A DNA stretch of 64,000 nt. Origin: Oikopleura dioica. Its lineage: Eukaryota; Animalia; Chordata. The first letter of the stretch is position 1. Each line of letters begins with the position of its first letter. The position numbers and the translations under genes are program-made. Shown piece after piece: positions 2,328-62,959 of this stretch. Below the pieces are notes generated by a model, which saw only the letters and a program-made list of their open reading frames with translations, was not told where the DNA came from and made no database searches. The DNA lies in NCBI GenBank assembly GCA_907165135.1, contig CAJRAX010000007.1, positions 67,585-131,584 of the forward strand. Reading direction: 5' to 3'.

Positions 2328-3366
2328 TGATAATAATAGGCAAAAGAACAATACAAAAAATCGAAAAAAAAATTATTCTTTATCACGGCCCGTTTTCGCC
2401 AATTCGGATAATTATTTGCATGAAAATCACGAATGCGTTAAATCGGACATTGGAGCCAGTTCGAATTCTGCTGGTAAAAATGAGACCATTTTTATCTTAT
2501 TTTTGTAACGTACGCGTTATCACAAAACTCTGAAGGCACATTAGCCACCCGCTTATGCGGTTTTGTTAACCCTTTTCAGTATTTCTAGGATTCCGAATTT
2601 ATTCTTTGCTCAAATTTAATTTCACCTTTCTTAACTTATTTTGAACTTTCAATTTATCCTGTAAGTATCTACTGAACGATTCTCGCTGGACTCATCCCCT
2701 TCCCTTACTCGACAAGCTGTATGGACTTTCATCCTCTCGCAGAGTTCCGCTTTTGCGGCTTGACACTGTGACCCCGTGCCCCGCGGGATGGCGGTGTCAG
2801 TAAGTGCTCCGAGGTAGGCGACGTTTGTATGAACACTTTTTCGGCTCGATTTAAGACGACTGGCCCTCTTCTTGGATAACGACGAAAATGCGGCTTCAAC
2901 AACTTCGACAGCTTCGACAACTACGACTACTACGACTTGGACAAATGCTATGGACTGACAACGATTATGGAACTGGAATCAGCAAAAATACTTATCAGAA
3001 TGTGATATGGTCACATAGTGAGAAGTTGATCATTCTGATTAGTAATTATTGGCAACGAGCGGCTTTATTTTTGGGAACGAAAAATATCGAAAGAAGAAAA
3101 CATGGAAGAAAATCGGTGCAACTTTCGCGGCGCCATATTTGGAAAGAAAATAAACACGCGAAATGCGTGAAATCGCCTTATTTGGAAATTTAAACATCTG
3201 CGCGAAATTTCATTTGAAAATTTGAACTTTGAAAAATCACTCTTCGTCTTACCAAAAATAATAAAGCCGTCTTCGTTATTTTTCTCGACTCATCCTTAGC
3301 AAGCTGCAATTAGCTTAATTAGTAATTTTTGATTAGCGCCAGTGAGAAAACGCAGAATTTGCATCA
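2328..3366 (+). repeat. 3' LTR of element A (~1039 bp, TGATAA...GCATCA)
   Basis: Boundaries inferred from alignment with the D junction (TGGCCATAC|TGATAA vs TGGTCATAC|TGATAC) and from the satellite start; shares internal blocks with the D LTR. The partner LTR is not in the window. Confidence 0.8.
2742..2818 (+). ncRNA. Putative structured cis-acting RNA element in LTR A, ending in a 5' splice-site-like GAG|GTAGGC
   Basis: Hairpin CCGC-TTTT-GCGG, stem TGACACTG/CGGTGTCA, inner CCCG/CGGG; covaries with B, C, D and E. Confidence 0.6.
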
Positions 3367-6997: not shown

Positions 6998-8167
6998 TGA
7001 TACCGACTAAAGAATCTCTCCCTGCGATGTAAATACTTGCAAGTAAAATTCGAAAATAATTTTTTGCTTTTTCGTGGATTTATTTGGAAACGTGAATGAT
7101 TTTCAAAATTTCAAATTTTTGAAGAATAGTATTTTTAAACCGGTTGGTTCCGGATTTTCCATTGTTCCGTCGATGGCGCCATTACGGGCCTTTGTGCTTC
7201 TTACATAATCAATTGATGCCAATTTTTATCTTTTTACGTAACGGTTAATAAATAGACAGTTACATAACTATGTTACGTTTCTTTTCATTTTTTTCATTTT
7301 TGTTGATTTCTTGCCACATGTGGCGCTTTTTCCCAGTTATGAAAAATAAGAGCTTCTCACTATGTGACCACTCATATTTTTCATAATTAGCAAAGTTGTC
7401 GTTTTTGTCAAAGTCCGTTGTCCATGTCCAGTGTCAGTCCAAGCCAGTCCGTTGTCCGTGTTGTAGTTGAAGTTGTTGAAGAAGAAGTTGTCGCCATCGC
7501 CGGTCCATTGTGTAGCCATGATTTCTGTTAATTGGTCAAGTTAACTAGAAAACGCAGCCGTAACAGCTCATCAACGATTTTGATTACCTGGGAGCGCTTA
7601 TGACCACGGTTTACCGGTTTGGGATATTCTGCCCGCGGTTACTTTGTGATCAGCCCTTACGGGAAGCTCAGCCAGTAAGAATCTGTGTTCCAACTTTTCC
7701 GTCGTTGTCGAAGCCATTTGAGATCATCCTTCAGTCGTTGATTTTGACACAGAATAATTAATAAAATCAAGAAATTTTCCGAAAGACACGAGTTAACTTT
7801 GAAATCATAGAAGAAGGCTAATATTGTTTTCTTAAAGAAATTTATTTCTTTCCGATTTTTGAAAACATAAATATCCTAAAACAGTTAATAATAAAACCTT
7901 TTAAAAGCCCTTGACAGTAAGACTTTTAAAAGGCGCGGCTAATGTGCCTTTGAGTAAATATAATCGACGCGTACGTAGACACAATCCTAAAGGTATAAAG
8001 ACTCTTTATAACCTTTGCCCTGACTATTCTACTTAGACCCTGATTCAAAGTAAATTTGAACCATAAGAAACTGATCTGGCTCGTAAGATCATTATAATTC
8101 TAGTGTGATATTTTAATTTTGGCCGTGAAATATTTTTTTTTTGGACCGTTCTCCTCATTAGGTATCA
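6998..8167 (-). repeat. 3' LTR of element B (TGATACC...GGTATCA)
   Basis: Direct repeat of 14177-15346 with a 7-bp terminal inverted repeat. Confidence 0.96.
7582..7669 (-). ncRNA. Putative structured RNA element in LTR B (second copy 14761-14848), ending CAG|GTAATC
   Basis: On the minus strand: CCC-GTAA-GGG hairpin, stem TGATCAC/GTGGTCA, inner ACCG/CGGT and GGG/CCC. Confidence 0.55.
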
Positions 8168-14176: not shown

Positions 14177-15346
14177 TGATACCGACTAAAGAATCTCTCC
14201 CTGCGATGTAAATACTTGCAAGTAAAATTCGAAAATAATTTTTTGCTTTTTCGTGGATTTATTTGGAAACGTGAATGATTTTCAAAATTTCAAATTTTTG
14301 AAGAATAGTATTTTTAAACCGGTTGGTTCCGGATTTTCCATTGTTCCGTCGATGGCGCCATTACGGGCCTTTGTGCTTCTTACATAATCAATTGATGCCA
14401 ATTTTTATCTTTTTACGTAACGGTTAATAAATAGACAGTTACATAACTATGTTACGTTTCTTTTCATTTTTTTCATTTTTGTTGATTTCTTGCCACATGT
14501 GGCGCTTTTTCCCAGTTATGAAAAATAAGAGCTTCTCACTATGTGACCACTCATATTTTTCATAATTAGCAAAGTTGTCGTTTTTGTCAAAGTCCGTTGT
14601 CCATGTCCAGTGTCAGTCCAAGCCAGTCCGTTGTCCGTGTTGTAGTTGAAGTTGTTGAAGAAGAAGTTGTCGCCATCGCCGGTCCATTGTGTAGCCATGA
14701 TTTCTGTTAATTGGTCAAGTTAACTAGAAAACGCAGCCGTAACAGCTCATCAACGATTTTGATTACCTGGGAGCGCTTATGACCACGGTTTACCGGTTTG
14801 GGATATTCTGCCCGCGGTTACTTTGTGATCAGCCCTTACGGGAAGCTCAGCCAGTAAGAATCTGTGTTCCAACTTTTCCGTCGTTGTCGAAGCCATTTGA
14901 GATCATCCTTCAGTCGTTGATTTTGACACAGAATAATTAATAAAATCAAGAAATTTTCCGAAAGACACAAGTTAACTTTGAAATCATAGAAGAAGGCTAA
15001 TATTGTTTTCTGAAAGAAATTTATTTCTTTCCGATTTTTGAAAACATAAATATCCTAAAACAGTTAATAATAAAACCTTTTAAAAGCCCTTGACAGTAAG
15101 ACTTTTAAAAGGCGCGGCTAATGTGCCTTTGAGTAAATATAATCGACGCGTACGTAGACACAATCCTAAAGGTATAAAGACTCTTTATAACCTTTGCCCT
15201 GACTATTCTACTTAGACCCTGATTCAAAGTAAATTTGAACCATAAGAAACTGATTTGGCTCGTAAGATCATTATAATTCTAGTAGGATATTTTAATTTTG
15301 GCCGTGAAATATTTTTTTTTTGGACCGTTCTCCTCATTAGGTATCA
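14177..15346 (-). repeat. 5' LTR of element B
   Basis: Direct repeat of 6998-8167; followed on the minus strand by ATGGAGACCACGG. Confidence 0.96.
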
Positions 15347-18054: not shown

Positions 18055-19460
18055 TGATACAATAGTGAAAAAATAAGGATAAAAAAAAAATTAATTCTAT
18101 AATTCTTTTCACGGTTAAAATAAACTTCAAAGCCAGTCTCAAGATACTCTCCCCAAAAGTCACGATACTGTAAAAAGATAGCGTTTAATATCGCTCAAAC
18201 CTTCTCCTCACGGTCAAATCATAATTCACTTGTAAATGATATGCTTGCGCTCATACGTTCAATCAGTGCTAGAACCATTATTGAACCTCTATGACAAGCG
18301 AGCTATCGATCGTTGGCTCTTCTGGAAAATGCTCTCATTATTTCAATCGGTTCGGGATTAAAATAAGCGGTTCTTCAGTCTAGGCATAATTTACACGTAC
18401 GCGTGTGTTGATAAAAACTGTACATATTATTCGGTAACTATTTCATCCTAGCCGCTTATTCCCATTGTTTTATTGCTTCAAAAATTTCAAAATTGCTCTC
18501 ATCTGCATGAAAAAATCCGTTTTGCATGATCCAAATTTCATATTGAATATGCTCTTTATTATTATTCGAGAATAATTATTGCGCGCATGATTATTAAATT
18601 CGCATTTATTCGCTCAATTATAATCCCTCGCTGTTCGAGGATTTATTCTCTTGATTCTAGTCTCATTACTGCACGATCTGACGACAACAACGACGAATGC
18701 GAGTTCTACCGCCTCGCCAACTCTTCAAAGACGACTTCAAAAGGCACTCCTGGGCGAGCCGGATGGCAAGCTTCTACAGCTGCAGATACTGGAGATCTTC
18801 GAGGTTCCTTATCTCCGATAAGGCTTGACGCAAAGTAATGAGTCCAATGAACCGCGTCAGTAACTGCCCGAAGGTGAGCCGAAGTACTTTTTCATATTTA
18901 TACGCATTTATTTTAATCTGTAATAATCTTTTAATTTAACTGTAATGCTTAATTTATTTGTTCTCTCTTTTCTCGTTGTTATAATGATTAACTGGCCTAA
19001 TTATTATAATCATCTTTATTTGTGCTTTTTATTTACTTTGTTTTAAAATCTTTTCTATAATCCTGGAACGACTCAGCAGCGCAATACGCTTATTGGCGCC
19101 TTTAAACCCTTCACCTGTTCGCTCTTTAAAACGAAAAATTGCTTCGAGAACCCGGCTCAAGCTCAAGAAAAATGATCTGAAAAGATCGCAAAAATATTCA
19201 TCCGGATGAACTTCAGCGAACTGTTTATTTTCAATTCATGAAAATCATGCTTTATTTGCGTGCGCCTATTATTATGTTTTTGTTTACGAATTGCAGCTGC
19301 GCTAAAAGATGCATTTCGCTCACCGCCAAAATATCCTCAGACTTACAATAAACTCCCAACAAGCGAAAGCTTTCAATTTTTATCGAATTATTTGCAGGGA
19401 AAATTAATTAGTGTTAGAAAAATTTTAATTGCAATCAACGAAGAGACCTCGATTGTATCA
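18055..19460 (+). repeat. LTR 1 of C (TGATACAAT...ATTGTATCA, 9-bp terminal inverted repeat)
   Basis: Repeated at 25636, 33224, 54828 (inverted) and 60543 (truncated). Confidence 0.96.
18801..18879 (+). ncRNA. Putative structured RNA element in LTR C, ending AAG|GTGAGC
   Basis: Hairpin CCTTATC-TCC-GATAAGG, stem TGACGC/GCGTCA, AGTA/GAA internal loop. Confidence 0.6.
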
Positions 19461-25635: not shown

Positions 25636-27045
25636 TGATACAATAGTGAAAAAATAAGGATAAAAAAAAAATTAATTCTATAATTCTTTTCACGGTTAAA
25701 ATAAACTTCAAAGCCAGTCTCAAGATACTCTCCCCAAAAGTCACGATACTGTAAAAAGATAGCGTTTAATATCGCTCAAACCTTCTCCTCACGGTCAAAT
25801 CATAATTCACTTGTAAATGATATGCTTGCGCTCATACGTTCAATCAGTGCTAGAACCATTATTGAACCTCTATGACAAGCGAGCTATCGATCGTTGGCTC
25901 TTCTGGAAAATGCTCTCATTATTTCAATCGGTTCGGGATTAAAATAAGCGGTTCTTCAGTCTAGGCATAATTTACACGTACGCGTGTGTTGATAAAAACT
26001 GTACATATTATTCGGTAACTATTTCATCCTAGCCGCTTATTCCCATTGTTTTATTGCTTCAAAAAATTTCAAAATTGCTCTCATCTGCATGAAAAAAAAA
26101 TCCGTTTTGCATGATCCAAATTTCATATTGAATATGCTCTTTATTATTATTCGAGAATAATTATTGCGCGCATGATTATTAAATTCGCATTTATTCGCTC
26201 AATTATAATCCCTCGCTGTTCGAGGATTTATTCTCTTGATTCTAGTCTCATTACTGCACGATCTGACGACAACAACGACGAATGCGAGTTCTACCGCCTC
26301 GCCAACTCTTCAAAGACGACTTCAAAAGGCACTCCTGGGCGAGCCGGATGGCAAGCTTCTACAGCTGCAGATACTGGAGATCTTCGAGGTTCCTTATCTC
26401 CGATAAGGCTTGACGCAAAGTAATGAGTCCAATGAACCGCGTCAGTAACTGCCCGAAGGTGAGCCGAAGTACTTTTTCATATTTATACGCATTTATTTTA
26501 ATCTGTAATAATCTTTTAATTTAACTGTAATGCTTAATTTATTTGTTCTCTCTTTTCTCGTTGTTATAATGATTAACTGGCCTAATTATTATAATCATCT
26601 TTATTTGTGCTTTTTATTTACTTTGTTTTAAAATCTTTTCTATAATCCTGGAACGACTCAGCAGCGCAATACGCTTATTGGCGCCTTTAAACCCTTCACC
26701 TGTTCGCTCTTTAAAACGAAAAATTGCTTCGAGAACCCGGCTCAAGCTCAAGAAAAATGATCTGAAAAGATCGCAAAAATATTCATCCGGATGAACTTCA
26801 GCGAACTGTTTATTTTCAATTCATGAAAATCATGCTTTATTTGCGTGCGCCTATTATTATGTTTTTGTTTACGAATTGCAGCTGCGCTAAAAGATGCATT
26901 TCGCTCACCGCCAAAATATCCTCAGACTTACAATAAACTCCCAACAAGCGAAAGCTTTCAATTTTTATCGAATTATTTGCAGGGAAAATTAATTAGTGTT
27001 AGAAAAATTTTAATTGCAATCAACGAAGAGACCTCGATTGTATCA
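25636..27045 (+). repeat. Shared middle LTR of the C tandem
   Basis: Preceded by GTGGTCACAG like a 3' LTR and followed by TGGCGAGCAC like a 5' LTR. Confidence 0.96.
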
Positions 27046-28293
27046 TGGCGAGCACAGAGACCACGAACCCACAACAGAAGCCACCAAATTGTAAGTCCCC
27101 GGTAGAATGGTTAAATAGCTCAACCCTTTTCTGTGTCGCCCCAGGGCAGAAATTTCTGAAAGATATGAAATTTTTTGAAATGTCTCTCTTGAAGGAAGAA
27201 ATCTCTGACCGGATAAATAGAGCAAAATGGATCTTTGAATCGTCGATAAAAGCCCATTCTCCTGATAATAAGACAGAGCTTTTGCGACAGTTTGAGAGAC
27301 AAGCAGGTTCTTTTATCATGAGTTGCTGCGGGATCAAGTTCTTTCAGGAGCACGGCGAGGAAATTTCTTGCCTTGAGTCGGCACAAGAAAAATTAGAATT
27401 TATTACCGGTTTTTTCGAAGAAGAATCGCCTGAAATAAGAGTCCAAAGAGCTAAAGAGAAACTCGAATCTCTCGTGCGCCGTATCGACTCATCTGAAAGT
27501 TTTGCTTCATTTTATAAAAGGATAAAAGCGTGCGCGGCTCTTATTTCAAGCGAAAAAATCGCCCAAGATTATATAATATAATATAATTTATATTGCTTCA
27601 GAAAAATTTAAGGGTAGCATTTCACCGGATAACGCATCGTTTTTACGGGATAATTTAAAAATGAAGGAGTCATGTGAGGCTATCGCACAATTTTTGGACA
27701 GTAGAGGGCGCCACGTGAAACCGAAACCTACAGCCGATATCGCCCAAATTCAAGTTGAGAGTCAGATTTCAAAGTTGATGGATAACCAGGCAGTCCTTAT
27801 CGCCAAACAAGCCAAAAATTTTGAATCAGCTGTTCAAGCCATCGAGGCTCGCGCAGAGAAAAATACAGCGGAATTACTTGACCAGATTAAAAATTTGACT
27901 TCTGAAATCTGTGCGCTCAAAATCGAAAAGCCTTCTTTTTTGCCTTCACAAGGGTTTCATCCTCAAAATCGTTTTATTGCCCCAAATCAAGGCCCATTCC
28001 AACCTCAATTTACTAACCCGAGTCCCCCCTTTTTCCGGCCGCGCAACCCCTACGCTCAGCAACGCTTTCCGGCCGGCCAGGGCCAACAAGGTCCCCGCCC
28101 TTCTATCGCTAGATATTGCCGCTTTTGTCAGACAAACGATCATTTCCGCAGTAATTGCCCTTATGTTACTTGCTTCGGATGTAATCAAAAAGGCCACATG
28201 CAAAATAATTGCCCTCTCAATAACGGTCAAGCTCAAAACGCGCCTCAGCCCCGTTTTTCTGCCCCACAAGGTCCAAGAGCTTCTTTAAACTAA
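27045..28293 (+). pseudogene. gag: gag of C copy 2 with the same (ATAAT)n insertion and stop at ~27570-27590
   Basis: ORF 27045-27581 ends QDYII*; the homologous sequence resumes in the +1 frame (EKFKGSISPDNASFLRDN). Confidence 0.85.
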
Positions 28294-33223: not shown

Positions 33224-34633
33224 TGATACAATAGTGAAAAAATAAGGATAAAAAAAAAATTAATTCTATAATTCTTTTCACGGTTAAAATAAACTTCAAA
33301 GCCAGTCTCAAGATACTCTCCCCAAAAGTCACGATACTGTAAAAAGATAGCGTTTAATATCGCTCAAACCTTCTCCTCACGGTCAAATCATAATTCACTT
33401 GTAAATGATATGCTTGCGCTCATACGTTCAATCAGTGCTAGAACCATTATTGAACCTCTATGACAAGCGAGCTATCGATCGTTGGCTCTTCTGGAAAATG
33501 CTCTCATTATTTCAATCGGTTCGGGATTAAAATAAGCGGTTCTTCAGTCTAGGCATAATTTACACGTACGCGTGTGTTGATAAAAACTGTACATATTATT
33601 CGGTAACTATTTCATCCTAGCCGCTTATTCCCATTGTTTTATTGCTTCAAAAAATTTCAAAATTGCTCTCATCTGCATGAAAAAAAAATCCGTTTTGCAT
33701 GATCCAAATTTCATATTGAATATGCTCTTTATTATTATTCGAGAATAATTATTGCGCGCATGATTATTAAATTCGCATTTATTCGCTCAATTATAATCCC
33801 TCGCTGTTCGAGGATTTATTCTCTTGATTCTAGTCTCATTACTGCACGATCTGACGACAACAACGACGAATGCGAGTTCTACCGCCTCGCCAACTCTTCA
33901 AAGACGACTTCAAAAGGCACTCCTGGGCGAGCCGGATGGCAAGCTTCTACAGCTGCAGATACTGGAGATCTTCGAGGTTCCTTATCTCCGATAAGGCTTG
34001 ACGCAAAGTAATGAGTCCAATGAACCGCGTCAGTAACTGCCCGAAGGTGAGCCGAAGTACTTTTTCATATTTATACGCATTTATTTTAATCTGTAATAAT
34101 CTTTTAATTTAACTGTAATGCTTAATTTATTTGTTCTCTCTTTTCTCGTTGTTATAATGATTAACTGGCCTAATTATTATAATCATCTTCATTTGTGCTT
34201 TTTATTTACTTTGTTTTAAAATCTTTTCTATAATCCTGGAACGACTCAGCAGCGCAATACGCTTATTGGCGCCTTTAAACCCTTCACCTGTTCGCTCTTT
34301 AAAACGAAAAATTGCTTCGAGAACCCGGCTCAAGCTCAAGAAAAATGATCTGAAAAGATCGCAAAAATATTCATCCGGATGAACTTCAGCGAACTGTTTA
34401 TTTTCAATTCATGAAAATCATGCTTTATTTGCGTGCGCCTATTATTATGTTTTTGTTTACGAATTGCAGCTGCGCTAAAAGATGCATTTCGCTCACCGCC
34501 AAAATATCCTCAGACTTACAATAAACTCCCAACAAGCGAAAGCTTTCAATTTTTATCGAATTATTTGCAGGGAAAATTAATTAGTGTTAGAAAAATTTTA
34601 ATTGCAATCAACGAAGAGACCTCGATTGTATCA
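33224..34633 (+). repeat. LTR 3 of C
   Basis: Direct repeat of LTR 1 and LTR 2; followed by TSD CTGAA and satellite. Confidence 0.96.
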
Positions 34634-40923: not shown

Positions 40924-42216
40924 TGATACGGAAGCGGCTGTCCTGCAGGAATTTTGCTCGATCTATAACTCTAGAATGCCAAGCGAAAATAACGAGAATC
41001 AAATTTAAAATTTGCTTGGTTTTATTTGTGATTTGAATGCCGGAAAAAGGCGCGACGCGGGGTTAAATAGCAGCGAGATTCAATCAGTGTTTTTGAACAA
41101 GCGGTTGTTTTTGAAAAACAATTTTTCTTTTGAAAACAAGGAAAAGAGCCCGTGGCTTTCTTTAGCGGTTTTTCTTGCGGGAAATCCTTTCGGATCGATT
41201 TCTTTTCGGATGATGAGCTGGTCGAACTTGCCAAGCAAGTTATTTTCAAAGGATTTTGAAGCCGGCGCCGCGCGTGACGAGATAAAACGCAAATTAATTT
41301 TTTTTGATAATAAAAGCAGAAAATAATAACAGCCACTAAAACTTCTCACTATGTGACCGTAGAAGTGACTGTTAATTAGGATTGAAAAATATAAAAGGAT
41401 GAGAAAAGAAAAAGAATATGTACAAAATTTTAACAAATAAATTGAATAAAATTTGGTCAGGATTTTATAAAATAAATTTATCAAAATTGAAATCATAGAA
41501 GAAGCAAATTCCAAGGAACATACCCGGGGGAAGTTACTGTCGCGGTTCGCACCGTATCTTCTCTTACGGATGAGCTAGTTTGCGACAAGCGGACGCACTG
41601 ACAGAGAGTTTGTCCGACCCCACGGCACCGAGATGATACGACGGTTTATCGGCTCGTTGGAGTAGTTGTTGTTGAAGAAGGTGTTGACGGCTATCTTGTT
41701 GTAGAAGTTGAATCGTATGAACTGTCAATAATCGAACTTTTAAAATCGCAAAGCAATGATAAGAAATATCAATAAATAGATTAAACATGCGGTTTTGCGA
41801 ATTGCATATTTTTGATGAATGGACGTCAGATCGCACTAGAATAGTCAGAAACAAATTAAGATTTTTTCCAAAGTATGCGTACATACACATTAATCCTAGA
41901 CTGAATAAACCCTTAATTAATTTCCGACCCGTTGACTATGATGAGAGCATATGAGCATTCCAATGATAAAAGTAGAAATCGTAAAGAGATGACATGATGA
42001 TAACACAATTTTGGGTCAATCTGGCTCGTAAAAACTGACCATCTTTTCATTTTGAGAAGAATATCGTGAAATGATTTTTGGAAAAATGTCTGATCAATTT
42101 GGTGATACCAAGCTGACAAGACAAATTTAAACTAACGTAGAACCGAATTGACGTAAATATTTGGCCGTGAAATAAATTTTTTGTGTTGCTTGAGGCGTTG
42201 TTCCCGAAGGATATCA
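40924..42216 (-). mobile_element. Solo LTR of a fifth family (E), 1293 bp, TSD TTTAC
   Basis: TGATAC...ATATCA termini; TTTAC at 40919-40923 and 42217-42221; shares CTTCTCACTATGTGACC, TCTGGCTCGTAA and TGGCCGTGAAAT with LTR B in the same orientation. Confidence 0.9.
41519..41620 (-). ncRNA. Putative structured RNA element in solo LTR E, ending GGG|GTATGT
   Basis: On the minus strand: CGGAC/GTCCG, TGTCGC/GCGACA and CCGTA/TACGG stems; GAACCGCGACAGTAACT matches C GAACCGCGTCAGTAACT. Confidence 0.55.
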
Positions 42217-43318: not shown

Positions 43319-44345
43319 TGATACGAATAAAGGAAAGAACACAAGAAAAAAATGAAAAATTGAATATCCCAGTCACATAAATATTTTCGCCAATTAGGTT
43401 GATTAGGCATGAATTTCACAGTTTTATGTTCCGACGATTTTCGGAGCCAAATCTCGGATGCTTGCATGAATTCATAAATCTCTATTTTTCCCTCATAACG
43501 TACGCGTTATTTCACAAATCAAAGGCACATTAGCCACCCGTTTCGGCGGTTCTTTATTTAACTCTTTCTAGTGCTCACTACTTCTTTTATTTAATTTTTG
43601 AACTGGTAATTATTATTGATGAATCAAGCTGACTCTTCTATGTCTTCAAAACGATGATGGCAATTCTTCTTGACGATAAAAAATCGATCGGCATTTTCTA
43701 CTACTACAACAGAGCTGTTGCATGGATTTCATCCTCTAGCTGAGTTCCGCTCTGCGGCTTGACAGTGTGACCCCGTGCTCCTCGGGATGGCGCTGTCTGT
43801 AAGTACTCCTAGGTAGGCAAAATTGATTGAACACCTTTCTGGCTCGCTTAAGGGAAGCTGACCACTCTCCTCAAAACCGACAGAATTGCAGCTTCAACAA
43901 TGGCGGCGACTTCTCTGGCAACAACGACGACTACGCAATGGACTGACAACGATTATTGGAACTGGCTTTGGAAAAGTATTAGTAAAAATTCATTAAATTC
44001 TATCAAAAAGGGATATGGCCACATAGTGGGAAGTTGAACTTTTTGATAAAATTTATTTCTTGGGATTAATTTCGAAGCGAACGTGGCTGTTTCGGCGAAT
44101 TTCGATTGACAGAAAAACAATTGCGCGAAAAGCGCTCACCATATTTGGAAAGAAAAACATGGCGCGAAATGCGCCGCGCCTTATTTGGAAAGAAACGCAC
44201 CTGCGCGAAATGCGAATTGAAAATTTGAAAATTTGAAAAATCACTCTCTCCATACTCAAAATAATACAGCCACGTTTTGAAATTTTGGCGTCATTCTTTG
44301 CAAGAATTCTAGCTTAGAGAGCATTTGAGCAGCAAATCGGTATCA
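43319..44345 (+). repeat. 5' LTR of D
   Basis: TGATAC...GTATCA; direct repeat of 50045-51071. Confidence 0.96.
43742..43818 (+). ncRNA. Putative structured RNA element in LTR D (second copy 50468-50544), ending TAG|GTAGGC
   Basis: CCGC-TCT-GCGG hairpin, stem GACAGTG/CGCTGTC (compensatory relative to A), inner CCCG/CGGG. Confidence 0.6.
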
Positions 44346-45412
44346 TGGTGAACACGCAAGACTCCAACTTCAAGGTAAATAAAATGCCCGAAGAATTACT
44401 TTTTGCCACTTTTCCGTCCCTCAATTCTCGTCAATTTTTTCGGCCTAATATGCTGTCTTATGAATTTACAATTTCCAAGAATAATTTGAGCGATAAAATT
44501 TCTGCAATGCGAAAAATTTTTGACAAAAGTATTAAGGATCACAATCGAGAGTCCGACCGCAATAATTTAGAAAAAGCTTTTGACAGACAAGTCGTAGACT
44601 GCATTCGCAATAATTGCTCTCACGAATTTATGAATAATTATGGGCGGGAAATGGCAAATTTCGAAAATATGGATGAAGTTTTTGATTTCCTGGAATCTGT
44701 TTTCGGAAGTGAATCTGAGGAAGAAAAGCGAGAGCGGGCGGGAGTCGAACTAGAAAACCTTTGTCGACGATCGGAAATGAATGAGAAGTTTTCGTCATTT
44801 TTGACACGAATTAAAACCGTCGCCGAGCTTATTTCTGATAAACAAGATGCTAGAGACTTTATTATCAACGCTCACTTTATGAAAAGCCTTGAGCCAGCGA
44901 ATAAGTCGTTTTTACGTGATCATGGAGTCAGTAAAAAGAGTGCTCAGGAGATTGCCACATTTTTGGACTCACGGGAGCGATTTTTGACTGTGAATGTTTC
45001 TTCGATCGAGTCGGCAAATCTTGCGTCCTTTGTTGATCGAACGAGCGAACTTTTGGATTCAAAATTGACTCAGATGGAATCAAATTATGAGCGCAAAAAT
45101 TCGGAATTACTTGAACAGATAAAACAATTAACAGCGACTGTAGCAAAGATAGAGCTCGAAAAGAAGGTCAAAAATGAGGAAATTAGCAGGCCAGCTAACC
45201 CGCCGGCCTCAGCAAATTTTATTCCGCCGTTTCCGTTCAGATTCCAGCAACCTCCCCAAGCGGCCCCTTTTTGCCGAAATTGCCAACAATGGGGTCATGT
45301 TAAGCCGAGGTGCCCCAAAATTAAATGCTACGAGTGTCAGGGTTTTGGTCATATCGGGCGAAACTGCTTGAAACGACGGGAAAATAGCACTCAGGATCAA
45401 TCAAAAAACTAA
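44345..45412 (+). CDS. gag: gag of D, 355 aa, two CCHC zinc knuckles
   Basis: CRNCQQWGHVKPRC and CYECQGFGHIGRNC; homologous to B Gag; the A of ATG is the last LTR base. Confidence 0.93.
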   Translation: MVNTQDSNFKVNKMPEELLFATFPSLNSRQFFRPNMLSYEFTISKNNLSDKISAMRKIFDKSIKDHNRESDRNNLEKAFDRQVVDCIRNNCSHEFMNNYGREMANFENMDEVFDFLESVFGSESEEEKRERAGVELENLCRRSEMNEKFSSFLTRIKTVAELISDKQDARDFIINAHFMKSLEPANKSFLRDHGVSKKSAQEIATFLDSRERFLTVNVSSIESANLASFVDRTSELLDSKLTQMESNYERKNSELLEQIKQLTATVAKIELEKKVKNEEISRPANPPASANFIPPFPFRFQQPPQAAPFCRNCQQWGHVKPRCPKIKCYECQGFGHIGRNCLKRRENSTQDQSKN

Positions 45413-48400: not shown

Positions 48401-49983
48401 GATTACGTGCACGTTGTGGGTTAGTAAATTGGGATCAGAACCTTCAAGAGGTTGTCCATGACCTTAATTCAAGCGAGCATTCAGTCACGAAAACATCCCC
48501 TTATTCCCTTCAAATGGGCGTGAAAAACGCTCATGACATTTTTGATCCAAATTTTAGGGCTTCTTTCGAAAAAAGTGATATTGATTTTCAACAAATTAAA
48601 AAATTGATCGAAGATGAAAAACAAAATAGGCTTGAGAAATTTTCAAACCCAAAATTTGTGCCTTATCAAATCGGCGACATGGTTCTTATCAAAAATTTCG
48701 ACGCGAAAAAACCAGCTTTTCTTGGGCCGTATAAAATAAAAAATAAATCGAAAGAGGGAACTTGGTATACAGTCGCGTCTGATGATAAAGAGTTTCGGCG
48801 ACACGCTGATCATTTGAAAAAATTTAACGCGCGAAAAGAGGATTCGGAAGATTTAGGTCTCTCAGTTGAACTTCCAGATATTCAAGACGATTTTTCGACC
48901 TTCCACAAAGACAATGTTTTCGAGCGAGAAAGTTTTTCAAGTGGTTTTTATTCTTGTCCACCTATTTCAATGAAGGAAGATGAAATAGAAGAAAAAATGG
49001 ACAACATAGTTAATTCATTAATTGATATTGTTTTTGAGAATATTTTTTCAGACTTGATTGTTGATACACTTGAATCTATGGAATCTTCCTCTGAGGAAAG
49101 TTCTTGTGTATCAATAATCGAGAATGAACAGAGTTTAAGAGAGCCCGATAGTTCGCAAAATATTGAAGCGATACCTAAACCTGACGATTTTCCGGTCTCT
49201 GGGTCCCTTATTTCATCTGATTCGGAGTGGGAAATTGAGGAAAATTCTCATTGGGAAGTGACGGTAGACGAAGAATTATCTACGGTTGAAACAGAAACAG
49301 TCCATGAAAATATAATAACGGAAGATCAAGAACCCCTTATTTCTTACGATAAATTAGATATTTCGGCAAATCGGAAACGCGAAAGAGAATCATCGAAAGA
49401 CTCCATTCCTTGCTCTAAAATACCAAATTTAGACCCAAAAGATAGCTCTGATGAAGAGTCAAATGATAGGTCGGAAATGATTTGTGAAAACTTCGATACT
49501 TCAATAACATTTAAATTAGAAAACGAGCATGAAAGTTTTTTCCAGAGAATAGAATCGAGAATTGAGGAGCTTGAAGAGAATATGGCAATTGAAAATGGGT
49601 GTATTTTGAAGTTGGGTGAATTAACAAAAGAAGCACTTAGATTTATCTTGCATAAGTTTGATGTTCAATATTTGACAACGGAAACGATATCAGATCTAAG
49701 AATAAAAATAAGAGAGTATATTTGGAAAAATCACCCTAATTGGCGAAAAAATGCATGCGGAGAGTTATTATTCTTTTCAATTTTAAATTTGAAAAAGAAA
49801 AAAAAACTCTTTATGATTTGAAAAAACCTGAATTGAAAGTTCTTATTGCTGAGTATAACCTGCCAAAATGTGTTTTGCAAAATAAGTCAGAAATGATTTT
49901 ATTTATTAATTCTGCTTTTGAAAAATTATATCCGAATCATCCAAAAAAAGAACAATGATCTCATATTCGGACCAAATATCTAA
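45403..49983 (+). CDS. pol: pol of D (PR, dUTPase-like spacer, RT, RNase H, integrase, tandem C-terminal domain)
   Basis: LLDTGS upstream of the called start; YMDD, ETDAS, EKE, TDN, YHEYCH..CSYC, GFDLI, LDNA, NGQVENYNR, FLGPY; two A-run indels near 49800 and 49950 restore the ending PKKNNDLIFGPNI*. Confidence 0.94.
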
Positions 49984-50044: not shown

Positions 50045-51071
50045 TGATACGAATAAAGGAAAGAACACAAGAAAAAAATGAAAAATTGAATATCCCAGTC
50101 ACATAAATATTTTCGCCAATTAGGTTGATTAGGCATGAATTTCACAGTTTTATGTTCCGACGATTTTCGGAGCCAAATCTCGGATGCTTGCATGAATTCA
50201 TAAATCTCTATTTTTCCCTCATAACGTACGCGTTATTTCACAAATCAAAGGCACATTAGCCACCCGTTTCGGCGGTTCTTTATTTAACTCTTTCTAGTGC
50301 TCACTACTTCTTTTATTTAATTTTTGAACTGGTAATTATTATTGATGAATCAAGCTGACTCTTCTATGTCTTCAAAACGATGATGGCAATTCTTCTTGAC
50401 GATAAAAAATCGATCGGCATTTTCTACTACTACAACAGAGCTGTTGCATGGATTTCATCCTCTAGCTGAGTTCCGCTCTGCGGCTTGACAGTGTGACCCC
50501 GTGCTCCTCGGGATGGCGCTGTCTGTAAGTACTCCTAGGTAGGCAAAATTGATTGAACACCTTTCTGGCTCGCTTAAGGGAAGCTGACCACTCTCCTCAA
50601 AACCGACAGAATTGCAGCTTCAACAATGGCGGCGACTTCTCTGGCAACAACGACGACTACGCAATGGACTGACAACGATTATTGGAACTGGCTTTGGAAA
50701 AGTATTAGTAAAAATTCATTAAATTCTATCAAAAAGGGATATGGCCACATAGTGGGAAGTTGAACTTTTTGATAAAATTTATTTCTTGGGATTAATTTCG
50801 AAGCGAACGTGGCTGTTTCGGCGAATTTCGATTGACAGAAAAACAATTGCGCGAAAAGCGCTCACCATATTTGGAAAGAAAAACATGGCGCGAAATGCGC
50901 CGCGCCTTATTTGGAAAGAAACGCACCTGCGCGAAATGCGAATTGAAAATTTGAAAATTTGAAAAATCACTCTCTCCATACTCAAAATAATACAGCCACG
51001 TTTTGAAATTTTGGCGTCATTCTTTGCAAGAATTCTAGCTTAGAGAGCATTTGAGCAGCAAATCGGTATCA
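50045..51071 (+). repeat. 3' LTR of D
   Basis: Direct repeat of 43319-44345. Confidence 0.96.
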
Positions 51072-54827: not shown

Positions 54828-57800
54828 TGATACAATCGAGGTCTCTTCGTTGATTGCAATTAAAATTTTTCTAACACTAATTAATTTTCCCTGCAAATAA
54901 TTCGATAAAAATTGAAAGCTTTCGCTTGTTGGGAGTTTATTGTAAGTCTGAGGATATTTTGGCGGTGAGCGAAATGCATCTTTTAGCGCAGCTGCAATTC
55001 GTAAACAAAAACATAATAATAGGCGCACGCAAATAAAGCATGATTTTCATGAATTGAAAATAAACAGTTCGCTGAAGTTCATCCGGATGAATATTTTTGC
55101 GATCTTTTCAGATCATTTTTCTTGAGCTTGAGCCGGGTTCTCGAAGCAATTTTTCGTTTTAAAGAGCGAACAGGTGAAGGGTTTAAGGGCGCCAATAAGC
55201 GTATTGCGCTGCTGAGTCGTTCCAGGATTATAGAAAAGATTTTAAAACAAAGTAAATAAAAAGCACAAATAAAGATGATTATAATAATTAGGCCAGTTAA
55301 TCATTATAACAACGAGAAAAGAGAGAACAAATAAATTAAGCATTACAGTTAAATTAAAAGATTATTACAGATTAAAATAAATGCGTATAAATATGAAAAA
55401 GTACTTCGGCTCACCTTCGGGCAGTTACTGACGCGGTTCATTGGACTCATTACTTTGCGTCAAGCCTTATCGGAGATAAGGAACCTCGAAGATCTCCAGT
55501 ATCTGCAGCTGTAGAAGCTTGCCATCCGGCTCGCCCAGGAGTGCCTTTTGAAGTCGTCTTTGAAGAGTTGGCGAGGCGGTAGAACTCGCATTCGTCGTTG
55601 TTGTCGTCAGATCGTGCAGTAATGAGACTAGAATCAAGAGAATAAATCCTCGAACAGCGAGGGATTATAATTGAGCGAATAAATGCGAATTTAATAATCA
55701 TGCGCGCAATAATTATTCTCGAATAATAATAAAGAGCATATTCAATATGAAATTTGGATCATGCAAAACGGATTTTTTTTTTTTCATGCAGATGAGAGCA
55801 ATTTTGAAATTTTTTGAAGCAATAAAACAATGGGAATAAGCGGCTAGGATGAAATAGTTACCGAATAATATGTACAGTTTTTATCAACACACGCGTACGT
55901 GTAAATTATGCCTAGACTGAAGAACCGCTTATTTTAATCCCGAACCGATTGAAATAATGAGAGCATTTTCCAGAAGAGCCAACGATCGATAGCTCGCTTG
56001 TCATAGAGGTTCAATAATGGTTCTAGCACTGATTGAACGTATGAGCGCAAGCATATCATTTACAAGTGAATTATGATTTGACCGTGAGGAGAAGGTTTGA
56101 GCGATATTAAACGCTATCTTTTTACAGTATCGTGACTTTTGGGGAGAGTATCTTGAGACTGGCTTTGAAGTTTATTTTAACCGTGAAAAGAATTATAGAA
56201 TTAATTTTTTTTTTATCCTTATTTTTTCACTATTGTATCACTGTGACCACTTACGGGTCTGGAACTATTTTTCTTCCTTTTTTTTGACAGTGATCAACGG
56301 TATAATTCTCTTAAAAGATGATTAAAATAACTTCTGTCTCGAGCTACCCTAGCGAAAGAAAAATTTATACTTCCGTGTCAGGACTAAATAAAAGCTCATT
56401 ATCAACTCGCTCATGATTTGGAAAATTGCTGGAAAAATATTATTCGATTATGGCCTCCATTTCGGCTTTGCGAAGATGAAAAATATTTTGAATATTATAA
56501 AAAACCGCAAGAGCCTTCAGCTCTGTTTTATTTAAATCGCTAAGTTTAGTCGGTTTTAGAACCATGAAAACACCATAAAATAGATATTCTCCATTCGATG
56601 ATTTTTTCCAGTTGGCAAAATTTTTGTTGATGTGATCCCTTATTTTTATTCGTAATTCAGCTGCGTTTTCATTGTTATCATTTAGTTTGAATTTATGACT
56701 AATGAATCTGAGCATAAGAATCGACAATTCGCTCAGTTTACAAAAAATTCCTCTTTCTACAGCCATATTTTGTTTGATCTGCTCGTATTTAGCTTCGAAC
56801 AATTCAAACAACTCTTGATTTTCATTTTCCAATTTTATCTGAATCGAAAAATCCATATTGTTAATATCAGGGGAATTTTCTTTCGTTTGAAGAGCTATTT
56901 CAAAATTATTGCTGTCCAAAATATGTACTTTCTGTGGTGTTGAAATGGAGTCTTTAGAAGATTCTCGAACGCGTTTTAGTGGATTATGACTAACGTTTAA
57001 TTCGTCAAAACTTGTTAAATCGGGCGTGTTATTTTCAATATTTAGTCGAGTCTCGGTTTCAGTTATGTGCTCTAAATTATGATTATCTAAACTCGAATGG
57101 TTTTTTGCAGGACTACTATCGGGCGTTTTTACCACATGAAAAATATTACCATTCGGAATGGGAGACGCCAAAGTGTCATTTTTTGATATGTTATCTACCT
57201 CAGCGTCTTCCACTTCGAAAGGTCTGAGTTCCGACTCATGATCTATTTCGGAATTATCAGAAAAATCGGTTAATTTTTTAGCGGATTTTGGTCTACATGA
57301 TTCGGGTCTTTTTGGTGTTTTTAGTTTAAGAAGTGGGTCCATCGGGGCAGGAATATTCTGATCAATTTCAAAGGTTGAATCTGAGCTTGTGCTTTGCGCT
57401 TTGGCCATAGATTCCGAAGATTCCGACTCCGATGAACTTTTGCATTCAGAAAAATTGTCATTTTGAGAAATCTCGGGACCGGACTGGGCAATTTCCTCAC
57501 ATGAATTCGCTTCATTTGAAAGCTCTTGGTTTATTGAATGAGGACTTTGCTCAATCGAACGTTTTTCTGGGTAAACGGCTGAAAAACAACCTATATTTTC
57601 ATTCTCAGATTCTAATTCTAGTCCAAATTTTGGTTGAAAAACAGGAATTCCAGAACAAGTTTCAAGGTTGGAATTACTGATTTTGCGCGTTTCATTATTC
57701 AAAAAATTTCCAGGCTCGACCAGGGGCTCATAGAACTTTCGCATATCAATTCCGTGTCTTCTGTATTCCCTACCCGTTTTTAAATTTTTGAGGTCATACC

Positions 57801-58144
57801 AAGTGCCAGTCGGGGATTTATTTGTAATTGTATATGGTCCAATAAAGGGCGGATACGAAGCGTTAAAATTTTTAATCAAAACTTTTTGACCAATCTCGTA
57901 TTCAATAAATTTATCATTTTTAAATTTTTCCAACCTCGTTGTTTTTTCCTTATCAATTTTTTCTTTAATTTCATCGAAAGCAATATTAATTCTTTGACCG
58001 TATTTACGAAAAAGCGGGTCGTTAGGATTATGGGCTTCCGCAAGTCCTGTCTCAATTTGAAAAGGGCTAAACTTAGAAACGGAATGAACACTGCTATTTA
58101 TTCCGTGAATCGCTTGATAAAGAAACAAGTCCCAGTTATTCATA
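54828..58144 (-). mobile_element. Inverted 5'-truncated copy of element C (LTR 54828-56240 plus pol 3' part)
   Basis: Reverse complement of ~31320-34633 including the same satellite flank (CTGAA side). Confidence 0.95.
56440..58143 (-). pseudogene. pol: pol fragment of C (end of integrase core to C-terminus, 567 aa), lacking promoter and upstream domains
   Basis: MNNWDLFLYQAIH...MEAIIE matches C pol without frameshift. Confidence 0.9.
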
Positions 58145-59120
58145 ACAAGTCTTCAGTTATTCATAACTTGTGCTTTGCGCTTTGGCCATAGATTCCGAAG
58201 ATTCCGACTCCGATGAACTTTTGCATTCAGAAAAATTGTCATTTTGAGAAATCTCGGGACCGGACTGGGCAATTTCCTCACATGAATTCGCTTCATTTGA
58301 AAGCTCTTGGTTTATTGAATGAGGACTTTGCTCAATCGAACGTTTTTCTGGGTAAACGGCTGAAAAACAACCTATATTTTCATTCTCAGATTCTAATTCT
58401 CTTCACCTGTTCGCTCTTTAAAACGAAAAATTGCTTCGAGAACCCGGCTCAAGCTCAAGAAAAATGATCTGAAAAGATCGCAAAAATATTCATCCGGATG
58501 AACTTCAGCGAACTGTTTATTTTCAATTCATGAAAATCATGCTTTATTTGCGTGCGCCTATTATTATGTTTTTGTTTACGAATTGCAGCTGCGCTAAAAG
58601 ATGCATTTCGCTCACCGCCAAAATATCCTCAGACTTACAATAAACTCCCAACAAGCGAAAGCTTTCAATTTTTATCGAATTATTTGCAGGGAAAATTAAT
58701 TAGTGTTAGAAAAATTTTAATTGCAATCAACGAAGAGACCTCGATTGTATCACTGAAAACGCCAAAAAACGCATCAGAATTTATATTTATTTTTTCTTTA
58801 TTTTTATGAACTGTAAATCATCTGAAAACGCAAAAAAAACGCATCAGAATTTTTATTTTTTTTTTTTTTTATTTTTATGAACTGTAAATCATCTTAAAAC
58901 GCAAAAAACGCATCAGAATTTATATTTATTTTTTATTTTTATGAACTGTAAATCATCTGAAAACGCCAAAAAACGCATCAGAATTTTTTTAATTTTTTTT
59001 TTTTATTTTTATGAACTGTAAATTATCTGAAAACGCCAAAAAACGCATCAGAATTTTTTTTAATTTTTTTTTATTTTTATGAACTGTTAATCATCTAAAA
59101 ACGCCAAAAAACGCATCTAA
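58145..59120. other. Template-switch patchwork: 21-nt templated insert, 234-bp repeat of 57386-57619, forward LTR 3' end (58401-58752) and satellite (58753-59117)
   Basis: Each piece matches a nearby donor; junctions are blunt or have 3-4 nt microhomology. Confidence 0.85.
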
Positions 59121-61443
59121 AAACTTGTTCTGGAATTCCTGTTTTTCAACCAAAATTTGGACTAGAATTAGAATCTGAGAATGAAAATATAGGTTGTTTT
59201 TCAGCCGTTTACCCAGAAAAACGTTCGATTGAGCAAAGTCCTCATTCAATAAACCAAGAGCTTTCAAATGAAGCGAATTCATGTGAGGAAATTGCCCAGT
59301 CCGGTCCCGAGATTTCTCAAAATGACAATTTTTCTGAATGCAAAAGTTCATCGGAGTCGGAATCTTCGGAATCTATGGCCAAAGCGCAAAGCACAAGCTC
59401 AGATTCAACCTTTGAAATTGATCAGAATATTCCTGCCCCGATGGACCCACTTCTTAAACTAAAAACACCAAAAAGACCCGAATCATGTAGACCAAAATCC
59501 GCTAAAAAATTAACCGATTTTTCTGATAATTCCGAAATAGATCATGAGTCGGAACTCAGACCTTTCGAAGTGGAAGACGCTGAGGTAGATAACATATCAA
59601 AAAATGACACTTTGGCGTCTCCCATTCCGAATGGTAATATTTTTCATGTGGTAAAAACGCCCGATAGTAGTCCTGCAAAAAACCATTCGAGTTTAGATAA
59701 TCATAATTTAGAGCACATAACTGAAACCGAGACTCGACTAAATATTGAAAATAACACGCCCGATTTAACAAGTTTTGACGAATTAAACGTTAGTCATAAT
59801 CCACTAAAACGCGTTCGAGAATCTTCTAAAGACTCCATTTCAACACCACAGAAAGTACATATTTTGGACAGCAATAATTTTGAAATAGCTCTTCAAACGA
59901 AAGAAAATTCCCCTGATATTAACAATATGGATTTTTCGATTCAGATAAAATTGGAAAATGAAAATCAAGAGTTGTTTGAATTGTTCGAAGCTAAATACGA
60001 GCAGATCAAACAAAATATGGCTGTAGAAAGAGGAATTTTTTGTAAACTGAGCGAATTGTCGATTCTTATGCTCAGATTCATTAGTCATAAATTCAAACTA
60101 AATGATAACAATGAAAACGCAGCTGAATTACGAATAAAAATAAGGGATCACATCAACAAAAATTTTGCCAACTGGAAAAAATCATCGAATGGAGAATATC
60201 TATTTTATGGTGTTTTCATGGTTCTAAAACCGACTAAACTTAGCGATTTAAATAAAACAGAGCTGAAGGCTCTTGCGGTTTTTTATAATATTCAAAATAT
60301 TTTTCATCTTCGCAAAGCCGAAATGGAGGCCATAATCGAATAATATTTTTCCAGCAATTTTCCAAATCATGAGCGAGTTGATAATGAGCTTTTATTTAGT
60401 CCTGACACGGAAGTATAAATTTTTCTTTCGCTAGGGTAGCTCGAGACAGAAGTTATTTTAATCATCTTTTAAGAGAATTATACCGTTGATCACTGTCAAA
60501 AAAAAGGAAGAAAAATAGTTCCAGACCCGTAAGTGGTCACAGTGATACAATAGTGAAAAAATAAGGATAAAAAAAAAATTAATTCTATAATTCTTTTCAC
60601 GGTTAAAATAAACTTCAAAGCCAGTCTCAAGATACTCTCCCCAAAAGTCACGATACTGTAAAAAGATAGCGTTTAATATCGCTCAAACCTTCTCCTCACG
60701 GTCAAATCATAATTCACTTGTAAATGATATGCTTGCGCTCATACGTTCAATCAGTGCTAGAACCATTATTGAACCTCTATGACAAGCGAGCTATCGATCG
60801 TTGGCTCTTCTGGAAAATGCTCTCATTATTTCAATCGGTTCGGGATTAAAATAAGCGGTTCTTCAGTCTAGGCATAATTTACACGTACGCGTGTGTTGAT
60901 AAAAACTGTACATATTATTCGGTAACTATTTCATCCTAGCCGCTTATTCCCATTGTTTTATTGCTTCAAAAAATTTCAAAATTGCTCTCATCTGCATGAA
61001 AAAAAAATCCGTTTTGCATGATCCAAATTTCATATTGAATATGCTCTTTATTATTATTCGAGAATAATTATTGCGCGCATGATTATTAAATTCGCATTTA
61101 TTCGCTCAATTATAATCCCTCGCTGTTCGAGGATTTATTCTCTTGATTCTAGTCTCATTACTGCACGATCTGACGACAACAACGACGAATGCGAGTTCTA
61201 TCGCCTCGCCAACTCTTCAAAGACGACTTCAAAAGGCACTCCTGGGCGAGCCGGATGGCAAGCTTCTACAGCTGCAGATACTGGAGATCTTCGAGGTTCC
61301 TTATCTCCGATAAGGCTTGACGCAAAGTAATGAGTCCAATGAACCGCGTCAGTAACTGCCCGAAGGTGAGCCGAAGTACTTTTTCATATTTATACGCATT
61401 TATTTTAATCTGTAATAATCTTTTAATTTAACTGTAATGCTTA
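59121..61443 (+). mobile_element. Terminal fragment of C: pol 3' end (ORF 59375-60343) and LTR 60543-61443 truncated by the telomere
   Basis: Matches 24215-26530; GTGGTCACAG|TGATACAAT junction at 60543. Confidence 0.95.
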
Positions 61444-62959
61444 GGGTTAGGGTTAGGGTTAGGGTTAGGGTTAGGGTTAGGGTTAGGGTTAGGGTTAGGG
61501 TTAGGGTTAGGGTTAGGGTTAGGGTTAGGGTTAGGTTAGGGTTAGGGTTAGGGTTAGGGTTAGGGTTAGGGTTAGGGGTTAGGGTTAGGGTTAGGGTTAG
61601 GGTTAGGGTTGGGTTAGGGTTAGGGTTAGGGTTAGGGTTAGGGTTAGGGTTAGGGTTAGGGTTAGGGTTAGGGTTAGGGTTAGGTTAGGGTTAGGGTTAG
61701 GGTTAGGGTTAGGGTTAGGGTTAGGGTTAGGGTTAGGGTTAGGGTTAGGGTTAGGGTTAGGGTTAGGGTTAGGGTTAGGGGTTAGGGTTAGGGTTAGGGT
61801 TAGGGTTAGGGTTAGGGTTAGGGTTAGGGTTAGGGTTAGGGTTAGGGTTAGGGTTAGGGTTAGGGTTAGGGTTAGGGTTAGGGTTAGGGTTAGGGTTAGG
61901 GTTAGGGTTAGGTTAGGGTTAGGGTTAGGGTTAGGGTTAGGGTTAGGGTTAGGGTTAGGGTTAGGGTTAGGGTTAGGGTTAGGGTTAGGGTTAGGGTTAG
62001 GGTTAGGGTTAGGGTTAGGGTTAGGGTTAGGGTTAGGGTTAGGGTTAGGGTTAGGTTAGGGTTAGGGTTAGGGTTAGGGTTAGGGGTTAGGGTTAGGGTT
62101 AGGGTTAGGGTTAGGGTTAGGGTTAGGTTTGGTTTGGTTTGGTTTGGTTTGGTTTGGTTTGGTTTGGTTTGGTTTGGTTTGGTTTGGTTTGGTTTGGTTT
62201 GGTTAGGGTTAGGGTTAGGGTTAGGGTTAGGGTTAGGGTTAGGGTTAGGGTTAGGGTTAGGGTTAGGGTTAGGGTTAGGGTTAGGGTTAGGGTTAGGGTT
62301 AGGGTTAGGGTTAGGGTTAGGGTTAGGTTAGGGTTAGGGTTAGGGTTAGGGTTAGGGTTAGGGTTAGGGTTAGGGTTAGGGTTAGGGTTAGGTTAGGGTT
62401 AGGGTTAGGGTTAGGGTTAGGGTTAGGGTTAGGGTTAGGGTTAGGGTTAGGGTTAGGGTTAGGGTTAGGGTTAGGGTTAGGGTTAGGGTTAGGGTTAGGG
62501 TTAGGGTTAGGGTTAGGGTTAGGGTTAGGGTTAGGGTTAGGGTTAGGGTTAGGGTTAGGGTTAGGGTTAGGGTTAGGGTTAGGGTTAGGTTAGGGTTAGG
62601 GTTAGGGTTAGGGTTAGGGTTAGGGTTAGGGTTAGGGTTAGGGTTAGGGTTAGGGTTAGGGTTAGGGTTAGGGTTAGGGTTAGGGTTAGGGTTAGGTTAG
62701 GGTTAGGGTTAGGGTTAGGGTTAGGTTAGGGTTAGGGTTAGGGTTAGGGTTAGGGTTAGGGTTAGGGTTAGGGTTAGGGTTAGGGTTAGGGTTAGGGTTA
62801 GGGTTAGGGTTAGGGTTAGGGTTAGGGTTAGGGTTAGGGTTAGGGTTAGGGTTAGGGTTAGGGTTAGGGTTAGGGTTAGGGTTAGGGTTAGGGTTAGGGT
62901 TAGGGTTAGGGTTAGGGTTAGGGTTAGGGTTAGGGTTAGGGTTAGGGTTAGGGTTAGGG

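Follow-up and report, generated by a model that had tools for sequence, protein, structure and literature searches.

The locus

The window, meaning the whole stretch of 64,000 nt of Oikopleura dioica DNA that was analysed, ends in a telomere, with (TTAGGG)n from position 61441 onward. Its non-telomeric part consists of arrays of a 59-69-nt satellite carrying inserted LTR elements of the Ty3/gypsy type, and the G+C content outside the telomere tract is ~33%. Five LTR families, here called A to E, can be told apart (Table 1). Their assignment to Ty3/gypsy is based on the TG..CA LTRs, the target duplication, the PBS-like TGG, the Gag knuckle and the order of the pol domains: all LTRs start with TG, end with CA and are flanked by 5-bp target duplications, TGG stands after the LTR in B, C and D, and Pfam models place reverse transcriptase before RNase H and integrase, in addition to recognising a CCHC zinc knuckle in Gag. 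The nearest named relative of Pol is a gypsy-type protein of Oikopleura dioica itself (40% identity), and metagenome proteins are nearer (50-70% identity). The gag ATG of B, C and D adjoins the last base of the LTR or overlaps it, which agrees with the statement of an earlier note on this DNA that gag starts at the LTR edge.

The state of the genes is given as counts estimated from tblastn pieces, in which a natural gag-pol recoding site may be included. By this measure, gag is a single piece in the B copy and its pol has two frame changes, C1 has one frame change in gag and two in pol, and C2 has one in gag and two in pol plus a same-frame split; C2 also holds a single open frame of 1402 residues from the reverse transcriptase to the end. 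The D copy has gag and pol uninterrupted, the two open frames sharing 22 nt in a -1 arrangement, and, since its LTRs are also identical, it is regarded as a young copy. The A element and both partial C copies are truncated. After the integrase core, some 460-500 residues continue in the same open frame in A (775-2271), D (48427-49818) and C, and this region may be a targeting domain. It was considered as an env-like splice target and rejected, the ~460 residues after the integrase having neither a hydrophobic segment nor a sequence match in Pfam or the PDB.

When the flanks of positions 18055, 34633, 43319, 51071, 6998, 15346, 40924, 42216 and 3366 are compared, all five families are seen to have inserted, in either orientation and with 5-bp duplications, no more than ~35 nt from one and the same part of the satellite unit, which suggests target-site choice for the subtelomeric satellite. 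Towards the chromosome end, the terminal C LTR stops after 898 nt, 73 nt beyond the GT of the junction described below, and (TTAGGG)n follows immediately, the LTR and the first telomere repeat sharing three bases (TTA); this boundary (61367-61445) looks like a chromosome break healed by new telomere addition. An island of a TTTGG-type 5-nt repeat (62128-62205) breaks the otherwise regular telomere tract. Just inside the terminal C copy, the patch 54828-59120 is rearranged: besides the inverted partial C copy it includes 352 nt from the end of the C LTR, an inverted duplicate of 234 nt and a short tandem repeat.

Table 1. LTRs, three-way junctions and candidate introns in the window; the introns are inferred
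Feature	Family and copy	Position	Strand	Remarks
LTR	A	2328..3366	+	3' LTR; element cut by window edge; TG..CA ends; aligns with D
LTRs	B	6998..8167 (3' LTR), 14177..15346 (5' LTR)	-	full copy; pair 99.6% identical; 5-bp target duplication
LTRs	C, tandem	18055..19460, 25636..27045 (middle), 33224..34633	+	LTRs shared between tandem copies
LTR	C, inverted partial copy	54828..56240	-	
LTR	C, terminal partial copy	60543..61440	+	cut short, telomere-capped
LTRs	D	43319..44345 (5' LTR), 50045..51071 (3' LTR)	+	full copy; pair 100% identical; 5-bp target duplication
LTR	E, solo	40924..42216	-	TG..CA ends; 5-bp target duplication; satellite on either side
Junction	A	2736..2815	+	includes GT 2814-2815; A+D model 108.8 bits
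Junction	D, 5' LTR	43736..43814	+	A+D model 104.9 bits; folds alone into same shape
Junction	D, 3' LTR	50462..50540	+	score equal to 5' LTR copy
Junction	B, 3' LTR	7586..7675	-	A+D model E 3e-6; sequence-only model 3.5 bits
Junction	B, 5' LTR	14765..14854	-	score equal to other B copy
Junction	C, first tandem LTR	18797..18875	+	A+D model E 2e-3; A+B+C+D model 86.5 bits
Junction	C, shared middle LTR	26382..26460	+	folding alone and model searches
Junction	C, last tandem LTR	33970..34048	+	covariance model search
Junction	C, inverted partial copy	55413..55491	-	covariance model search
Junction	C, telomere-capped short LTR	61289..61367	+	covariance model search
Junction	E, solo LTR	41522..41625	-	model built without E, E 8.5e-5
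Candidate intron	A	2814..2982	+	GT, AG-free stretch, first AG; no tool prediction
Candidate intron	D	43813..43976	+	
Candidate intron	C	26459..26661	+	longest AG-free run of LTR, 192 nt
Candidate intron	B	7371..7587	-	154-nt AG-free run, 13 GA / 0 AG
Candidate intron	E	41369..41523	-	no AG from GT to +153

A three-way junction in the LTRs

All 11 LTR copies spanning the region, from the five families, contain exactly one copy of an RNA fold that is found nowhere else in the window. It is a three-way junction of 80-105 nt, composed of a two-segment closing helix, a short hairpin and a long arm, and the strands that join its helices measure 1 nt, 1-2 nt and 5 nt. The longest of them has the same bases in all five families at columns 1-3; column 4 is either G (three families) or C (two), and column 5 either T (four) or C (one). 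Three-way junctions are classed by the length of their strands, a long third strand being associated with compact folds. Each of the five families, when folded alone, yields the same three helices in both the minimum-energy and the centroid structure, and RNAalifold predicts the same helices. From the end of the fold to the 3' end of the LTR there are 551 nt in A, 531 in D, 585 in C, 588 in B and 598 in E.

The earlier note had proposed a covarying RNA structure here, and all the helices that it quoted were recovered in their places (e.g., 2742-2818 in A, and the strands 18825-18831 and 18854-18860 in C), as was the spacing of 530-600 nt to the LTR 3' end, for which 531-598 nt were found. The hairpin and the main stem that it described are both real, but they are two arms of a three-way junction whose closing helix, formed by pairing between the flanks on either side of them, had been missed. 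The letters of those flanks are less uniform than had been written, in that E does not have the 5' flank in that form and only A and C match the 3' flank exactly. Likewise, the five families do all carry the fold, but A and D, with 93% mean column identity across the motif and ~75% identical stretches elsewhere in the LTR, are close relatives, so that the comparison comprises about four independent lineages and not five.

Evidence for a conserved RNA structure

The most direct evidence comes from searches across families. With a covariance model built from A and D only, both B (at 30.7 bits, E 3e-6) and C (at 20.9 bits, E 2e-3) are recovered at full length and on the correct strand, whereas a sequence-only model made from the same A and D rows fails to find C and E and gives B just a partial match of 3.5 bits (E 6). 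The families therefore share structure rather than sequence. In the same way, family E is detected at 41522-41625, with an E value of 8.5e-5, by a covariance model made from the other four families, the next match in the 128 kb searched having an E value of 0.21.

The alignment of the 11 copies (five distinct rows) points in the same direction, bearing in mind that it is model-guided, i.e., fitted to the model, after MAFFT on whole LTRs and on the motif had misaligned C and E. In it, 98.9% of the pairing cells can pair, compared with 75.5 +/- 3.2% in shuffles, and both sides have changed at 13 of the 19 pairs, compared with 5.0 +/- 1.6 in shuffles; five covariation measures all exceed 500 of 500 shuffles. 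If the 3' partner is slid by 1-3 columns, pairing drops to 41-51% and the covarying pairs to 1-3. Eight cells of the alignment are G.U and none is A.C, an imbalance in favour of the sense strand as the one that folds. Folding energies are less informative: the z-scores range from -1.0 to -2.6 on the sense strand, which is modest, and from -0.6 to -3.2 on the antisense strand, and, being modest and similar on either strand, they decide neither significance nor strand. Altogether, a covarying RNA fold common to the five LTR families is confirmed, as the earlier note had claimed for LTRs that otherwise align poorly.

What is this RNA? No Rfam family matches at the gathering score anywhere in the window, and sensitive local Rfam searches around the C and A copies returned chance-level matches only, with no ribozyme up to E 10. 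None of the self-cleaving ribozymes of Rfam (hammerhead, HDV-like, twister, pistol, hatchet and others) matched, which bears out the expectation of the earlier note on ribozymes and on novelty. ARAGORN predicts no tRNA gene and no Rfam tRNA was found. No conserved reading frame runs through the fold or elsewhere in the LTR, and a conserved LTR-encoded protein was rejected as a candidate, its matches being low-complexity or confined to A-D similarity at the nucleotide level. The loop E/sarcin-ricin motif, to which the earlier note likened an internal loop of C, B and E, is not a feature of the element as a whole: the letters of a loop-E-like internal loop are present in C, B and E only and, as they are missing from A and D, they do not define the element.

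A candidate splice site at the end of the closing helix

The 3' strand of the closing helix ends on a G that is identical in all five families, and in all five the next two bases are GT. Taking this G as position -1, position -2 is A in four of the five families, position +3 is a purine in every one and position +5 is G in four, and the candidate exon end would be the last 4-8 bases, which form the 3' strand of the closing helix. On the 3' side of the GT there follows, in each family, a stretch of 69-190 nt free of AG. Summed over families, these stretches have no AG against 27.8 expected from local composition, together with 37 GA and 57 CT, and in B, C and E the stretch after the GT is the longest AG-free run of the whole LTR. 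The first AG appears at +153 to +215, which would delimit candidate introns of 155-217 nt. To judge from these letters, the GT, the AG-free stretch and the first AG look like an intron. The resemblance is uneven in its 3' part, where C and E alone have a good pyrimidine tract, that of A, B and D being poor, and where the candidate acceptors of B and D are weak, their first AG having a poor context.

Extending the helix over the intron side of the GT gives pairing no better than in shuffles; since the pairing stops at the exon side, only that side of the candidate splice site would be occluded. Long-range pairing between the fold and the leader or the start of gag was not significant. The 5-nt junction strand was also considered as a splice donor and rejected, because the base preceding it is engaged in the pair that closes the long arm, which is U-A in B and U.G in the other four families, and because GT is lacking there in B.

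Other features lie near the junction. A block of 17 nt about 200 nt past it (3009-3025 in A) is identical in A, B and E, differs at two places in D and has no counterpart in C. It is similar to the sequence just before and at the beginning of each LTR, the plus-strand primer region, and might serve as a second priming site or be left over from an older LTR start. A three-base-periodic tract, in which codon-like triplets ending in AC or TC are frequent, stands downstream of the junction in A (2890-2945), B (7520-7440, minus strand) and D (43895-43935) and upstream of it in C (26265-26300) and E (41700-41640, minus strand), with no convincing shared reading frame in any of these tracts.

Position of the fold relative to transcript starts

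Whether the fold would be part of the gag mRNA depends on where transcription begins, and on this the distribution of ATGs offers some indications. The tail of the LTR without ATG before gag comprises the last 133-204 nt in A-D and 573 nt in E. Between the fold and this tail there are 6-14 ATGs in A-D, and the density of ATGs upstream of the tail is normal. The ATG-free tails suggest that the gag mRNA starts within the last ~200 nt of the LTR, in which case the fold would lie in U3; as U3 is transcribed at the 3' end, a fold placed there would stay in the RNA, with a change in the function that can be proposed for it. In E, ATGs are missing from the whole interval between a point 160 nt upstream of the fold and the end of the LTR, except for two inside the candidate intron, and this distribution fits a long leader instead. 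The earlier note had regarded a fold located upstream of the transcription start as fatal to its proposal, and here the ATG pattern hints at U3 in A-D and at a long leader in E.

Other possible signals, found with textbook poly(A)-signal and TATA-like patterns, are leads rather than assignments. In all five families a hexamer resembling a poly(A) signal precedes the LTR end by 85-113 nt, with TATA-like runs ~70 nt ahead of it in A and B. Every family has a further TATA-like run 30-38 nt ahead of a conserved block that is itself ~230-400 nt upstream of the fold. This block, of 10 nt, is at 2508-2517 in A and at the homologous places of all five LTRs, with one or two changes in E, and a second conserved block follows it in A, B, D and, in changed form, C. 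The 10-nt block could mark an upstream transcription start, and the TATA-like run together with the block makes a second start, upstream of the fold, possible. On the whole, it is doubtful that the fold lies within the 5' leader.

Possible functions of the junction

The reading that we favour, tentatively and with rather less than even confidence, is that of a cis-acting RNA module, acting on the sense strand, that gates a splice site inside the LTR. According to it, the junction would hold the exon side of the candidate 5' splice site in its closing helix, the helix would set how often the site is used and, in that way, the balance between unspliced full-length and spliced RNA would be adjusted; the junction might also be a recognition surface for the zinc-knuckle Gag of the element itself. 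This is proposed because the fold covaries, the GT adjoins the helix in all five families, AG is avoided after it and there is a precedent in HIV-1, where the major splice donor is sequestered by a junction of the leader (PMC5192399). We infer three things: use of the GT in splicing, a limit set on this use by the helix, and the identity of the transcripts that contain the fold. Among the functions offered in the earlier note, a splicing switch alone has direct sequence support, in the form of the GT in five of five families and the AG-free stretch. The ATG-free tails and the 6-14 ATGs of A-D argue against gating, by pointing to a gag mRNA start downstream of the fold: the site would then be in the 3' UTR, where a retained intron is hard to explain. 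Moreover, no env-like gene that would need a subgenomic spliced RNA is present in these elements.

Those same ATG patterns speak for a different and unlikely reading, namely that the fold lies in U3, is present only in the 3' UTR of the full-length RNA and acts there on stability, export or 3'-end formation, the GT being incidental or non-productive. Besides the ATG-free tails before gag and the normal ATG density upstream of them, the poly(A)-like hexamer in five of five families and the TATA-like runs in A and B would make up the canonical arrangement of a long U3, a short R and a short U5. Nonetheless, this leaves the GT and the avoidance of AG in all families unexplained, and E, free of ATGs from the fold to gag apart from the pair in its candidate intron, is better accounted for by a long leader. 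It is more doubtful still that the fold, independently of splicing, serves in packaging or dimerisation as a signal to which the nucleocapsid zinc knuckle of Gag binds. The CCHC knuckle would provide the partner, the leader is wholly inside the LTR given that gag begins at its edge, and packaging signals of retroviruses are structured junctions of such a kind (PMC5192399, PMC7599994); however, the apical loops have no conserved palindrome, a 6-nt palindrome being found in A and B only, and the fold is possibly upstream of the RNA start.

The remaining explanations have a lower probability. A separate small structured RNA, or a self-processing RNA of an undescribed class, would agree with the compact module of 80-105 nt with its closing helix, with the TATA-like run that precedes the conserved block by 30-38 nt (230-400 nt upstream of the fold) and with the lack of anything similar in Rfam, but it is very improbable, there being no promoter-like signal immediately upstream of the fold, no consistent T-run after it, no match to a ribozyme model up to E 10 and no tRNA in the search. 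We would hardly expect there to be no RNA structure at all, with the inverted repeats being protein-binding sites in the DNA or a chance resemblance: the modest z-scores, similar on either strand, and the small number of independent lineages agree with it, but three nested helices still pair despite changes in their letters, the structure model finds families that are invisible to the sequence-only model, and wobble pairs occur on one strand only. Finally, an IRES-like element driving the translation of gag, one of the roles suggested before, is extremely improbable. Only the loop-E-like internal loop of three families speaks for it, and that loop is missing in A and D; the fold is 531-598 nt upstream of the gag ATG, with many ATGs between them in A-D, and the tail before gag is free of ATGs, as is typical of a scanned leader.

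Comparison with known systems

To our knowledge, structured cis-acting RNAs, although well studied in retroviruses, have hardly been reported from animal Ty3/gypsy elements, and few are backed by true covariation. The nearest known kind would be, by analogy, the junction in retroviral leaders by which the major splice donor is sequestered (PMC5192399, PMC7599994). In the HIV-1 leader, residues of the main 5' splice site are engaged in long-range pairs, and this is thought to link the choice between splicing and packaging (PMC5192399, PMC7599994). As in the HIV-1 5' leader, to which the fold is likened by description, a junction is formed in the RNA of a retroelement, and in the present families its closing helix ends at position -1 of the GT in five of five. 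Unlike the HIV-1 signal, which is downstream of the primer-binding site in a mapped leader and has a tandem junction with a dimerisation loop, the fold described here has only one junction and lies within the LTR, maybe in U3, with more than 530 nt between it and the primer-binding site downstream, and the candidate intron is also inside the LTR.

Within the same species, the Tor elements, which are also of the Ty3/gypsy type, have transcription starts mapped inside the 5' LTR; among them, Tor3a has splice donors close to the start of gag, and env is present and expressed via splicing or an internal promoter (PMC4402516). The elements of the window differ from Tor in having no env-like gene, and a term search of the Tor paper found no passage on structured LTR RNA (PMC4402516). 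A donor-like GT that lies 30-50 nt past the gag ATG in C (27090-27096), D (44373-44379) and B (~14140, minus strand) recalls the donors of Tor3a (PMC4402516).

A second parallel is with BARE of barley, for which the title and abstract of the source describe two start sites in the LTR that give distinct RNA pools, translated versus replicated, separated by splicing (PMC3735527). Two such pools would reconcile, in the LTRs studied here, an upstream start that contains the fold with a short ATG-free leader; the existence of two start sites in them is a conjecture by analogy. BARE is, unlike these elements, a plant element of the Copia type, and its title and abstract mention no conserved junction fold (PMC3735527). 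Cer1 of C. elegans, in turn, is a Ty3/gypsy element whose full-length RNA, having splice sites, must escape nuclear retention (PMC10309623). It also resembles the present elements in having an orphan protein region after pol, although the extra protein of Cer1 is made from a spliced mRNA (PMC10309623), whereas the ~460 residues found here are in frame with the integrase in A, C and D. No RNA fold is known to be linked to Cer1.

Significance

Four to five diverged families that keep the same junction with changed letters provide a comparative case for how an element without a leader outside its LTR might arrange its splicing, its translation and the selection of its genome. If the GT is truly spliced, an intron kept within the LTR would be unusual, and the division of one transcript among several fates could be tested by transcript mapping alone. 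Going one step further, the LTR might be an exon-intron unit of its own whose exon end is the covarying junction, with fold-containing RNAs from an upstream start in the LTR as the unspliced, replicated pool, and spliced RNAs or those begun in the last ~200 nt as the translated one. We hold this wider proposal to be distinctly improbable; if it were true, it would represent an RNA switch of a class undescribed for LTR retrotransposons, and one common to several families that target the same subtelomeric satellite.
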